From assembly GCF_016432865.1 (NCBI RefSeq), contig NC_067400.1, forward strand, positions 612,994,001 through 613,058,000: 64,000 bases of DNA. The letters are read 5' to 3'. The stretch is from Antechinus flavipes. Its lineage: Eukaryota. Shown here piece by piece: positions 26,632 to 28,605 of the stretch (position 1 is its first letter; each line of letters starts with the position of its first letter). The translations under genes and the position numbers were made by a program. The notes under the pieces are model-generated. The model saw only the letters and a list, made by a program, of their open reading frames with translations. It was not told the DNA's origin and did not search any database.

Positions 26632-28605
26632 ATGGCTCCGCGTGGCCTCGTGCCCCTGCTGCTGCTGCTGCTGCTGGGCCTGGGTGAGCCCGGGCCTGGG
26701 CCAGAGGGGGGAGTGGCCGGCCCGGCCGGGGGGCTGCTGGGGGGGAGGGGGGAGGGAGAGGGGAGGCAGGGGCCGGGCCAGGCTTCCGACAGTGAGCCAG
26801 GTGTGGGCAGGGCCGGGCCCATCTGCAGACAGTGAGCCCACTCAGGACCCCGGTGGGGCAGGGGACGGGCCAGCTTCCCACAGTGAGCCCGCTCAGCCCC
26901 CCGGACAGCGCTGAGCAGCGGCTCCCTTGGGCTGAGGCCCCCCATTCCCTTCTTTCCCACAGCTGGCGCTGCACCTCTCTCGCGGCAGGAGGTGAGGGCT
27001 TGGGACCCACAATCTCACCCCAATCCCCTCTTCACCTCTGTCCCCGCCCGAGTTCCATCTCTGGGAGTGACCGTCCCCGCATGATCCCGGGTCCCCAGAT
27101 CCCGCCCTCTGTCTGCAAGCCCCTCCCGGGCCCCGGCCTCTCCCCAGGCCCTTCCTCAGCTCCGCTTCCTGCCCCCTCTCCCTGCCCTCAGTCCCCCCGT
27201 TTGCCTCACTGCCCCTCCCAGGTCACCCGATGCCTTGAAGAGGCCCTCCAAGACAAGCTGAGCCCGGGGGGCCCTCGGGAGGGTCCTTGCACGCAGCTCT
27301 TCCAAGCAGGTAGGAAGGTGGGCCCCCGGTCCCCCCGCTGACCCCCATGTCCCCCCAGCCCGTTAACGCCGCCCTTCCTGCCCCTAGATGAGCGGCTCAC
27401 GTCCCTGCTCCAGACCCTAGAGGGGCTCAGGCACCAAGGTAGGAGCAGGACCCCTGACCGGGGGGCGGGGGAGCCTGTGGGGGAGCCCGGGAGTGAATGA
27501 AGGGGAGGGGGAAATGGCCGCCGTGCCTGATCCTCTGCCTTTTCTCCCTCAGAGATCTCCAAGCACCATCTGAGTCCCGAGCCCGAGGGAGAGGAGCAGG
27601 AGGTGGAGGAGGAGGATTTCAGGAAGAAAAAGAGGGGGCGTGGGGAGGCGGAGGGGGAGAAGAGGCAGGGCCAGGAGGTGAGGGAGGAGGAGGAGGAGGA
27701 GGAGGAGGAGGTGAAGGCCAAGGGAAAGTCAGAGATCAGGGTGCAGGAGGGGAGGGGGCAGCCCAGGGCCGGAGAGGAGGAGGAAGAGGAGGACGGGAGG
27801 AGGAAGAGGAGGGGGCCGGCCCAGGAAGAGGCGGCGGAGGCCTGGGGCCGGGGCCTGGAGAAGCGTGTGGCGGAGAAGGCCAGCGATGAGGAGACTGCCC
27901 AGTTTGAGGAGGAGGAGAAGGGGGTGAGGCTGTCCGGGGGAGGCCACAGCTTGTGGCAGGGGGCCGGCCCCGCCCACAGACCCCACCACCCCGTGCCCCA
28001 GCAGGAGCAGGAGGAGCAGGAGGAGGAGCAGGTGAGCCAGCTAGGCTGGCAGACCCTGTGGACCACGGAGGAGGGAGGGCCAAGGGGGGCCAGCAAGACC
28101 CCATTTCAGGCCTGTCCAGCGGCCAATTGGCACTGCTTAAGCACCTACTGTCTACCAGGCGCTGGGTTAAGCGCGAGGGATACAAAAAGAGGCAAGAGGC
28201 AGCTCCTGCCCTCACGGAGCTCACGGCTAAGGGCAGAGCACCTGCAGACAGAGCAGGGCCTAGACAGGCCGGACCGGGATGGCCAGCAGGGCCAGGCCCT
28301 GCCCCTTCCCCTGGCATTCCTGGCAGCTCACCTAAGCCTCAGGGTTGCGTAAGAGGGGCCAACCTGCACGGGTAGGGAAGGCTCCCTCTGCCGGGAGCAC
28401 CCCGCAGTAATGACATCGGTTTCTCCCCCCCCCCCCCGTGCCAGCCCGGATAGGGACCACCGAGGCCGCAGCTGGGGGGGGGGGAGGCCCTCAGATCACT
28501 GAGTGTCATTCCCCCACCCCCCAGGAACACCGCGAACTGGAGCGCCTGGAGCAGATGGGGGACGAGCTCAAGAGGGCGGCCGAGGCGCTAAGCAAGAGGG
28601 GCTGA
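26632..28605 (+). CDS. CCER2: Coiled-coil glutamate-rich protein 2; secreted, acidic, chromogranin-like; 259 aa including a 51-nt exon
   Basis: Exons 26632-26683, 26963-26991, 27222-27309, 27388-27438, 27553-28031, 28525-28605 (780 nt, intact). Leu-rich signal peptide, VTRC...[18 protein letters not shown] and SLWQGA match CCER2 from memory. Syntenic position between SARS2 and NFKBIB. Confidence 0.9.
28110..28260. mobile_element. L2 3'-tail fragment in the last intron of CCER2
   Basis: TTAAGCACCTACTGTCTACCAGGCGCTGGGTTAAGCGCGAGGGATACAAAAAG...CCTGCCCTCACGGAGCTCAC, a typical L2 tail. Confidence 0.7.

Follow-up and report, generated by a model that had tools for sequence, protein, structure and literature searches.

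CCER2 occupies positions 26632-28605 on the forward strand of a 64,000-nucleotide stretch of Antechinus flavipes DNA (NC_067400.1, 612,994,001 to 613,058,000; the whole stretch is hereafter called the window), and our analysis indicates that it is a rapidly evolving mammalian orthologue of a true chromogranin-family gene, a paralogue of CHGA whose product would have a granule role like those of CHGA and CHGB. We put the probability of this interpretation at roughly 0.78. Orthologues occur in cartilaginous fishes, coelacanth, amphibians, and reptiles. A sequence-only reading of the window had proposed that CCER2 was an unrecognised third chromogranin, and transitive profile matches, direct hhalign comparison, intron positions and phases, and neighbouring genes all support that proposal, with CHGA as the nearest relative demonstrated. 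All comparisons with individual granin sequences were made with CHGA.

Common ancestry with CHGA was demonstrated over the signal peptide, the exon carrying a cysteine loop, the following helix exon (which we call the DER exon, after its first residues in CHGA), and the C-terminal helix exon. We base this conclusion on the matches to bridging sequences, a direct hhalign probability of 85.3%, identical intron positions and phases, and conserved neighbouring genes.

Bridging orthologues outside the mammals

A profile of eight mammalian CCER2 sequences, searched with HMMER against 1.84 billion representative proteins, also matched five non-mammalian proteins of 344-421 amino acids (AA). These were proteins already named CCER2 from the turtle Carettochelys (E 9.6e-19), the squamate Rhineura (E 8.7e-18), and the caecilian Geotrypetes (E 1.2e-11), as well as a protein from the frog Discoglossus (E 3.7e-10) and one from the sawfish Pristis named chromogranin-A-like (E 9.3e-4). 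These first five proteins scored 30.5-47.7 bits against the Pfam Granin model (PF01271), all above its gathering score of 25 bits, and 16 of 18 non-mammalian CCER2-like proteins matched the model at E<=0.01. Searching with the N-terminus of the Pristis protein added rays, sharks, coelacanth, caecilians, turtles, and lizards and then many true CHGA proteins, and a search with the central block of coelacanth CCER2, a conserved segment described below, gave seven candidates that included salamanders, a soft-shell turtle, and a gecko.

The N-terminus of these non-mammalian proteins is CHGA-like (KVT[RK]CIVEV[IL]SDTLSKP…EC…LKEDERVLAM.HHQ.LL.ELE) and their C-terminus is of the granin type, ending RRG, and they carry the CCER2-specific central block (KRV.E.ASDEET.QFE.EEKG) nearly letter-for-letter as mammals do. 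The proteins of Pristis, Latimeria, Geotrypetes, Rhineura, and Carettochelys, variously named CCER2 or chromogranin-A-like, are orthologues of Antechinus CCER2, with a like central block, six-exon structure, and set of intron phases. The non-mammalian proteins differ from the Antechinus protein in being longer (344-507 AA versus 259 AA) and in having kept the CHGA-like, Pfam Granin-positive N-terminus, whereas the Antechinus protein is Pfam-negative.

For profile-profile comparison, CHGA was represented by ten true CHGA proteins from birds, frog, and tuatara, each with the WE-14 motif present or CHGA by name. The non-mammalian set matched this profile at 99.9% probability (E 4.5e-33) with 49% identity over 86 N-terminal columns, and the collinear hhalign path continued to the C-terminal helix. 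Mammalian CCER2 in turn matched the non-mammalian set at 99.5% (E 1.7e-22), and marsupial CCER2 did so at 99.6% (E 4.7e-25) across 99 columns at the N-terminus. Among solved structures, the CCER2-like profile was matched only by the 25-residue human CHGA 39-63 peptide (PDB 6r2x; E 1.1e-6), which fell on the DER helix.

The bridge was not the sole route to CHGA. A profile of marsupial CCER2 alone matched CHGA directly at 85.3% (E 6e-6) in a 65-column alignment that begins in the signal peptide, spans the loop, and reaches DER..SLL. Profile-profile comparison, which the sequence-only reading had named as a check on its proposal, thus came out in favour of it both directly for the marsupial profile and by way of the orthologues (99.6%, then 99.9%). 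Shuffle tests gave p<=5e-5 for the Antechinus exon 3 and exon 4 peptides together against their swan CHGA counterparts, p=6.5e-4 for exon 3 alone, and p=0.012 for the last-exon peptide against the last exon of swan CHGA. The likeness of the CCER2 exon peptides to those of CHGA is more than chance. In ESM Atlas features, Chromogranin-A clusters ranked right after CCER2's own (score 0.87, 178 features in common), which we take as a lead only, and proSAAS was a distant look-alike at rank 24. Judged by eye, the loops of shark and coelacanth (CIVEV[IL]SDTLS[KR]P) conform to the opening of the strict granin loop pattern.

Birds, crocodilians, and teleosts gave no CCER2-like protein among the matches listed above bird CHGA, despite more than 100 bird CHGA clusters. 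This apparent gap may reflect true loss, the limits of the search, or GC-rich regions missing from assemblies.

Gene model and exon structure

The gene was read and spliced by hand from 26300-29000. It comprises six exons separated by introns that are all GT-AG, and its coding sequence of 780 nucleotides (nt) encodes 259 AA, a model that matches the NCBI CCER2 of Antechinus flavipes letter-for-letter. The intron phases after exons 1-5 are 1,0,1,1,0. The sequence-only reading had given these same phases, which splicing confirmed, and had described a signal peptide, an exon 3 beginning VTRC, a two-cysteine loop, an acidic exon, dibasic sites, and a last exon, all of them correctly.

The coding part of exon 1 (26632-26683) holds the start codon and most of the Leu-rich signal peptide and ends at a GT donor opening a phase 1 intron, the position and phase of which are common to Antechinus CCER2, the shark and turtle CCER2-like genes, and swan CHGA. 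Exon 2 (26963-26991; 29 nt, followed by a phase 0 intron) completes the signal peptide and opens the mature protein with APLSRQE. It lacks 18 nt relative to the 47-nt exon 2 of the shark and turtle genes and CHGA, and its residue P22 was invariant in all 36 aligned CCER2, CCER2-like, and CHGA proteins.

Exon 3 (27222-27309; 88 nt, followed by a phase 1 intron) begins VTRC and is the granin disulfide-loop exon, aligning by hhalign with the loop exon of CHGA. It carries the only two cysteines of the Antechinus protein, C31 (27231-27233) and C50 (27288-27290), in a C-x18-C arrangement on an exon separate from that of the signal peptide. Both cysteines were invariant in 36 of 36 sequences; the disulfide bond itself is predicted. 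Exon 4 (27388-27438; 51 nt, followed by a phase 1 intron) encodes a 17-residue peptide and corresponds to the DER exon, which is 69 nt long in CHGA and the CCER2-like genes.

Exon 5 (27553-28031; 479 nt, followed by a phase 0 intron) encodes an acidic core, predicted to be disordered, with dibasic sites that include the clusters RKKKR (27621-27635) and RRKRR (27798-27812). Asp and Glu make up 27% of the mature protein, whose calculated pI is 4.85, and the dibasic sites number six in all (RKKKR97, KR110, RRKRR156, KR177, KR249, and KR257). Within exon 5 lies the central block (27861-27923; residues 177-197), a segment of 21 residues that begins at a dibasic site and contains an S-x-E site at S184. 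Exon 6 (28525-28605) encodes 26 residues of the C-terminal granin-type amphipathic helix, which ends KRG before the stop codon and includes L241, L248, and L255, invariant in 36 of 36 sequences.

Exon structures for the wider family were obtained by mapping proteins back onto their genomic loci. The six exons measured 46, 47, 94, 69, 863, and 84 nt in the sawfish CCER2-like gene and 46, 47, 94, 69, 695, and 84 nt in that of the turtle, both with phases 1,0,1,1,0, compared with 43, 47, 94, 69, 99, 507, 461, and 84 nt and phases 1,0,1,1,1,1,0 in the eight exons of swan CHGA. Exons 2-4 and the last exon are therefore equal in length in swan CHGA and the sawfish and turtle CCER2-like genes. The Antechinus exons (52, 29, 88, 51, 479, and 81 nt; phases 1,0,1,1,0) are shorter at exons 2-4 by 18, 6, and 18 nt, so that the frame is preserved. 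All four genes have an exon 3 beginning V-x-[RK]-C, an exon 4 beginning DER, and a last exon of 26-27 codons; the acidic core is one exon in CCER2 and three in CHGA. The sequence-only reading had held that the CCER2 introns follow the chromogranin pattern, and in the conserved exons both positions and phases agree between CCER2 and CHGA, the chromogranin for which they were measured.

A DNA run from a related individual or species carried a 24-bp insertion after 26931 in intron 1 and nine single-base differences, one of them a G>C change at 27266 in exon 3 that is synonymous (Pro42).

Comparison with known granins

CCER2 thus resembles CHGA in its signal peptide, a cysteine loop on its own exon, the DER helix exon that comes next, an acidic core with dibasic sites, and a C-terminal helix exon of 26-27 residues that ends in basic residues and Gly, and the non-mammalian CCER2-like genes of turtles and shark also have an ITPK1-family gene tail-to-tail downstream. 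It differs from CHGA in having 6 exons rather than 8 and 259 AA rather than about 460, in lacking the WE-14 motif, in having, in the sequences examined, QAD, QED, KED, or RED where CHGA has RGD before the DER helix, and in possessing its own ultra-conserved central block. The loop of mammalian CCER2 is degenerate and Pfam-negative, with C-x18-C in place of the C-x20-C of CHGA, and its published expression is confined to the hair-cell and Merkel-cell lineage, in contrast to pan-neuroendocrine CHGA. CHGB, also of the Pfam Granin family, is sorted by means of an N-terminal disulfide loop and has a homologous C-terminal motif, and the CHGB strings quoted in the sequence-only reading fit these motifs. 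It has 5 exons and about 680 AA and is not known to have a DER helix exon. The extended granins SCG2, SCG3, VGF, proSAAS, 7B2, and NESP55 are acidic granule proteins with dibasic sites that are grouped by their properties and not by homology, whereas CCER2 is related to CHGA by descent.

Gene order, phylogeny, and the origin of the duplication

Neighbouring genes tie the two loci together. The two turtles Carettochelys and Pelodiscus have the order SARS2(+), CCER2-like(+), and an ITPK1-family gene(-), and SARS2 lies directly upstream of CCER2 in the same orientation in the marsupial window and in both turtles. In the bamboo shark, the CCER2-like gene is likewise tail-to-tail with an ITPK1-family gene, and in the swan, CHGA is tail-to-tail with ITPK1, just as CCER2-like is in the turtles and the bamboo shark. 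The sawfish CCER2-like locus had no called neighbour gene within 10 kb. Because the pair adjoins at both the CHGA and the CCER2-like loci, a block of at least two genes, a granin and an ITPK1-family member, is duplicated. Over a short stretch, the last exon of the turtle ITPK1-family gene was 44-50% identical to swan ITPK1 and near-identical between the two turtles, which fits an ITPK1 paralogue rather than ITPK1 itself. In the marsupial, the ITPK1-family gene appears to have been lost or moved, with NFKBIB now at that position.

The intergenic space between the turtle CCER2-like and ITPK1-family genes is filled by a long tandem repeat (~26000-30700 in locus L003 and ~18600-25500 in locus L005), the unit of which is conserved between Carettochelys and Pelodiscus.

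The duplicated neighbour also bears on whether the chromogranin likeness could be convergent, a product of acidic composition and coiled-coil-like helices with no common ancestry. The failure of Pfam Granin on mammalian CCER2 would suit such an explanation, as would the Glu-rich core, which draws compositional matches. However, the matches that we obtained lie in N- and C-terminal exons that are not acidic, the two families are connected stepwise through orthologues at E values of 1e-18 to 1e-33, and the intron positions and phases are identical, in addition to the duplication of the neighbour gene, and we regard convergence as very improbable.

A maximum-likelihood tree was built from 36 proteins and 366 columns, without CHGB or cartilaginous-fish CHGA and with an assumed root on CHGA. 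The branch between CHGA and all the CCER2 and CCER2-like proteins was supported at 100/100, and with this root the CCER2 clade followed the species tree through cartilaginous fishes, coelacanth, amphibians, and amniotes. Mammalian CCER2 fell inside the amniotes at 99/99 on a stem branch of 1.07 substitutions/site, and the eutherian stem added a further 0.58 substitutions/site. Since frog CHGA grouped with amniote CHGA and the amphibian CCER2-like proteins grouped with amniote CCER2, the granin duplication predates the tetrapods, and a date earlier than the tetrapod origin is likely.

How much earlier bears on whether CCER2 arose in the two rounds of vertebrate whole-genome duplication (2R). 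On the human map, RIN3 lies near CHGA and ITPK1 on 14q32, RIN2 lies on 20p with CHGB, and RINL lies near CCER2 on 19q13.2; further links between 14q and 19q13 are NFKBIA/NFKBIB and AKT1/AKT2. This pattern would fit 2R ohnology. As a putative ohnologue, CCER2 is itself supported only by the duplicated granin and ITPK1-family pair. Under a different origin, the third chromogranin would have arisen by local or segmental duplication of granin plus ITPK1 outside 2R, and the shark genes would be single pro-orthologues of both CHGA and CCER2. The tree leaves room for this, consisting of three groups around one node with no outgroup, so that a root on the shark branch is possible; no cartilaginous-fish CHGA was among the matches listed, and the ITPK1-family neighbour in the shark can be assigned to neither paralogue. 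However, the sharks already have the central block and the six-exon structure of CCER2 and lack the WE-14 motif of CHGA, the "-like" in the NCBI label hints at a separate shark CHGA, and the RIN3/RINL, NFKBIA/NFKBIB, and AKT1/AKT2 links between 14q and 19q13.2 would favour 2R. We therefore consider an origin outside 2R unlikely, although it retains some weight.

Predicted structure and the central block

An AlphaFold2 model based on a 36-sequence alignment placed CCER2 helices at residues 25-40, 49-56, and 58-79 with block-mean predicted local distance difference test (pLDDT) values of about 76-85, and a C-terminal helix at residues 223-258 with pLDDT of 91-98. Across most of residues 86-213 pLDDT was below 50, in keeping with a disordered core, and the predicted template modelling score of the whole model was 0.27.

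No part of CCER2 is better conserved between sharks and mammals than the central block within this core, which is absent as such from CHGA. Its best local match in the middle of CHGA was KKRMEENDS, just after WE-14 (P=0.009, 4% probability), which is a lead only. A MAFFT placement of the block on the WE-14 flank of CHGA was unsupported. Because it shows the strongest constraint across the jawed vertebrates sampled, starts at KR177, and includes Ser184 in an S-x-E context, the central block is, from its sequence, the leading candidate for an interaction motif or for a phosphorylated peptide that is set free.

Divergence within mammals and a possible different role

Several results weigh against the assignment of CCER2 to the chromogranins or limit its reach. 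Pfam Granin, another check that the sequence-only reading had put forward, does not recognise Antechinus CCER2 directly, giving 0 matches for the protein, its exon pieces, or any of 20 CCER2 proteins from mammals at a threshold as loose as E<=1. A mixed profile of the 20 mammalian proteins matched CHGA at only 28.9% (P 6e-4), with the loop start correctly aligned. Judged by eye against the granin loop pattern, the 12-residue form of the marsupials and the eutherian CLAEVVTEVLT fit partly, and at the C-terminus the L-x6-L-x6-L frame is kept with some positions of the granin pattern unmatched. Eutherian CCER2 lacks the 17-residue exon-4 peptide and has a loop that the alignment shows to be remodelled, most of the aligned eutherian sequences have a second cysteine pair after the loop (C-x-T-E-x-x-x-C) that is missing in marsupials and non-mammals, and the eutherian C-terminus extends past the granin-type end with a 4-residue insertion before the final Gly. 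The tree has no outgroup, being without CHGB and cartilaginous-fish CHGA. Finally, transcript support for the Antechinus splice pattern was not found in three public RNA runs, which were nearly empty.

The eutherian features suggest that CCER2 function may have shifted in that lineage. Marsupial CCER2 retains the DER exon and a C-terminus of [KR]RG as in CHGA; at the loop start, the eutherian CLAEVVTEVLT is closer to CIVEVISDTLS than the marsupial sequence is. As the sequence-only reading had suggested, the marsupial copy is the less diverged of the two, as seen in the higher marsupial score against CHGA (85.3% versus 28.9% for the mixed set), in the missing exon-4 peptide of eutherians, and in their extra 0.58 substitutions/site.

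Such divergence would also be expected if CCER2 were homologous to the granins but had a non-granin role in mammals, such as constitutive secretion or extracellular calcium or matrix binding, with selection acting on the central block and the C-terminal helix only. The long mammalian stem and its eutherian extension, the blindness of Pfam Granin to every one of the 20 mammalian copies, the eutherian loss of the exon-4 helix and remodelling of the loop, and the fact that the best-conserved element is one that CHGA lacks all speak for this explanation. Against it, all mammals examined have kept the loop cysteines, the signal peptide, the dibasic sites, and the C-terminal helix, and expression lies in neuroendocrine-type cells, with CCER2 listed alongside CHGA in passages on Merkel cell carcinoma. 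A non-granin role in mammals seems to us improbable, if worth keeping in mind.

Proposed route to the secretory granule

If mammalian CCER2 has remained a granin, its function as a granule protein and prohormone would be expected to follow the behaviour of CHGA and CHGB. The signal peptide would direct CCER2 into the endoplasmic reticulum, and the N-terminal disulfide loop with the adjacent helices would guide it into the regulated secretory pathway. Its Glu-rich disordered core would bind calcium and aggregate in the acidic trans-Golgi and so contribute to the formation of dense-core granules. Prohormone convertases may then cleave the dibasic sites, with one product beginning at the ultra-conserved central block, and this putative product would contain Ser184 in an S-x-E context, a potential site for a Golgi kinase of the FAM20C type. 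Published expression would place this activity in mechanosensory and neuroendocrine cells of the ATOH1 lineage.

The fullest version of this proposal, in which CCER2 is the third 2R ohnologue of CHGA and CHGB and a granule-forming prohormone of ATOH1-lineage cells, with the central block as a secreted peptide signal and the protein as a possible circulating tumour marker, is put forward tentatively and has clearly less than even odds of being correct in all its parts.

Flanking sequence and neighbouring genes

Upstream of the start codon, a TATA-like box (TATAAG, 26536-26541) lies about 95 bp 5' of the ATG, and a half cyclic AMP response element (CRE; CGTCA) lies at 26498, both as consensus matches only. 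In the CHGA and CHGB promoters, a CRE typically lies near the TATA box. Two CAGCTG E-boxes at 26425 and 26440 (26425-26445) stand 15 bp apart about 100 bp 5' of the TATA-like box, against a window background of 0.58 per kb. As a lead only, they are candidate basic helix-loop-helix sites of the ATOH1 type and would fit the published ATOH1-lineage expression. Downstream, an AATAAA polyadenylation signal was read from the sequence at 28744-28749, about 140 nt past the stop codon. All of these elements were read on the forward strand.

In RNA data from another organism, one contig matched intron 5 at 28136-28158 and 28177-28195 in opposite orientations, and this match (28100-28230) looks like an interspersed repeat resembling a short interspersed nuclear element rather than CCER2 expression.

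The order of genes within 10 kb of CCER2 in the window is MRPS12(-), SARS2(+), CCER2(+), NFKBIB(-), SIRT2(+), and RINL(+). NFKBIB lies downstream of CCER2 on the reverse strand (28937-31122), followed on the forward strand by SIRT2 (31680-36889) and then by RINL (38013 onward).

Published expression and significance

CCER2 has been found to be hair-cell specific by single-molecule fluorescence in situ hybridization (PMC7221106) and to be expressed in a subset of small-cell lung cancer (PMC13481786). Two further papers describe it as an established marker of Merkel cell carcinoma (PMC12623243, PMC9974098), and it is measurable in human plasma and appears on plasma panels according to PMC13088631. 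These published patterns are compatible with a role in secretion in cells of the ATOH1 lineage and of neuroendocrine type.

Authors who employ CCER2 as a marker describe its function as unknown, and a 2021 review that counts nine granins does not include it (PMC8311481). A full-text search of 8.1 million PubMed Central papers and 0.36 million preprints found none with both "CCER2" and "granin"; in the same sources, five papers combine CCER2 with chromogranin and one with secretogranin, and these yielded no statement of a relationship, CCER2 standing in marker or protein lists in three of them. NCBI uses the name chromogranin-A-like for the shark genes and CCER2 for those of tetrapods and coelacanth, and several of the latter carry precomputed Pfam Granin hits, so the link between CCER2 and the granins is already implicit in the automatic annotation of the non-mammalian orthologues. 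The gene itself is known; its assignment to this family is new or, at the least, has not been published, and it is no new kind of system.

Descent from a chromogranin gives a concrete and testable function to a gene that marks cochlear hair cells, Merkel cell carcinoma, and a subset of small-cell lung cancer with high specificity. Seen as a granin, CCER2 may have a role in granule biogenesis, may yield processed peptides, and may serve as a blood marker analogous to chromogranin A. For the family as a whole, lineage-specific acceleration hid one of its members from Pfam in mammals, and the granin and ITPK1 gene pair offers a handle on the evolution of the vertebrate regulated secretory pathway.

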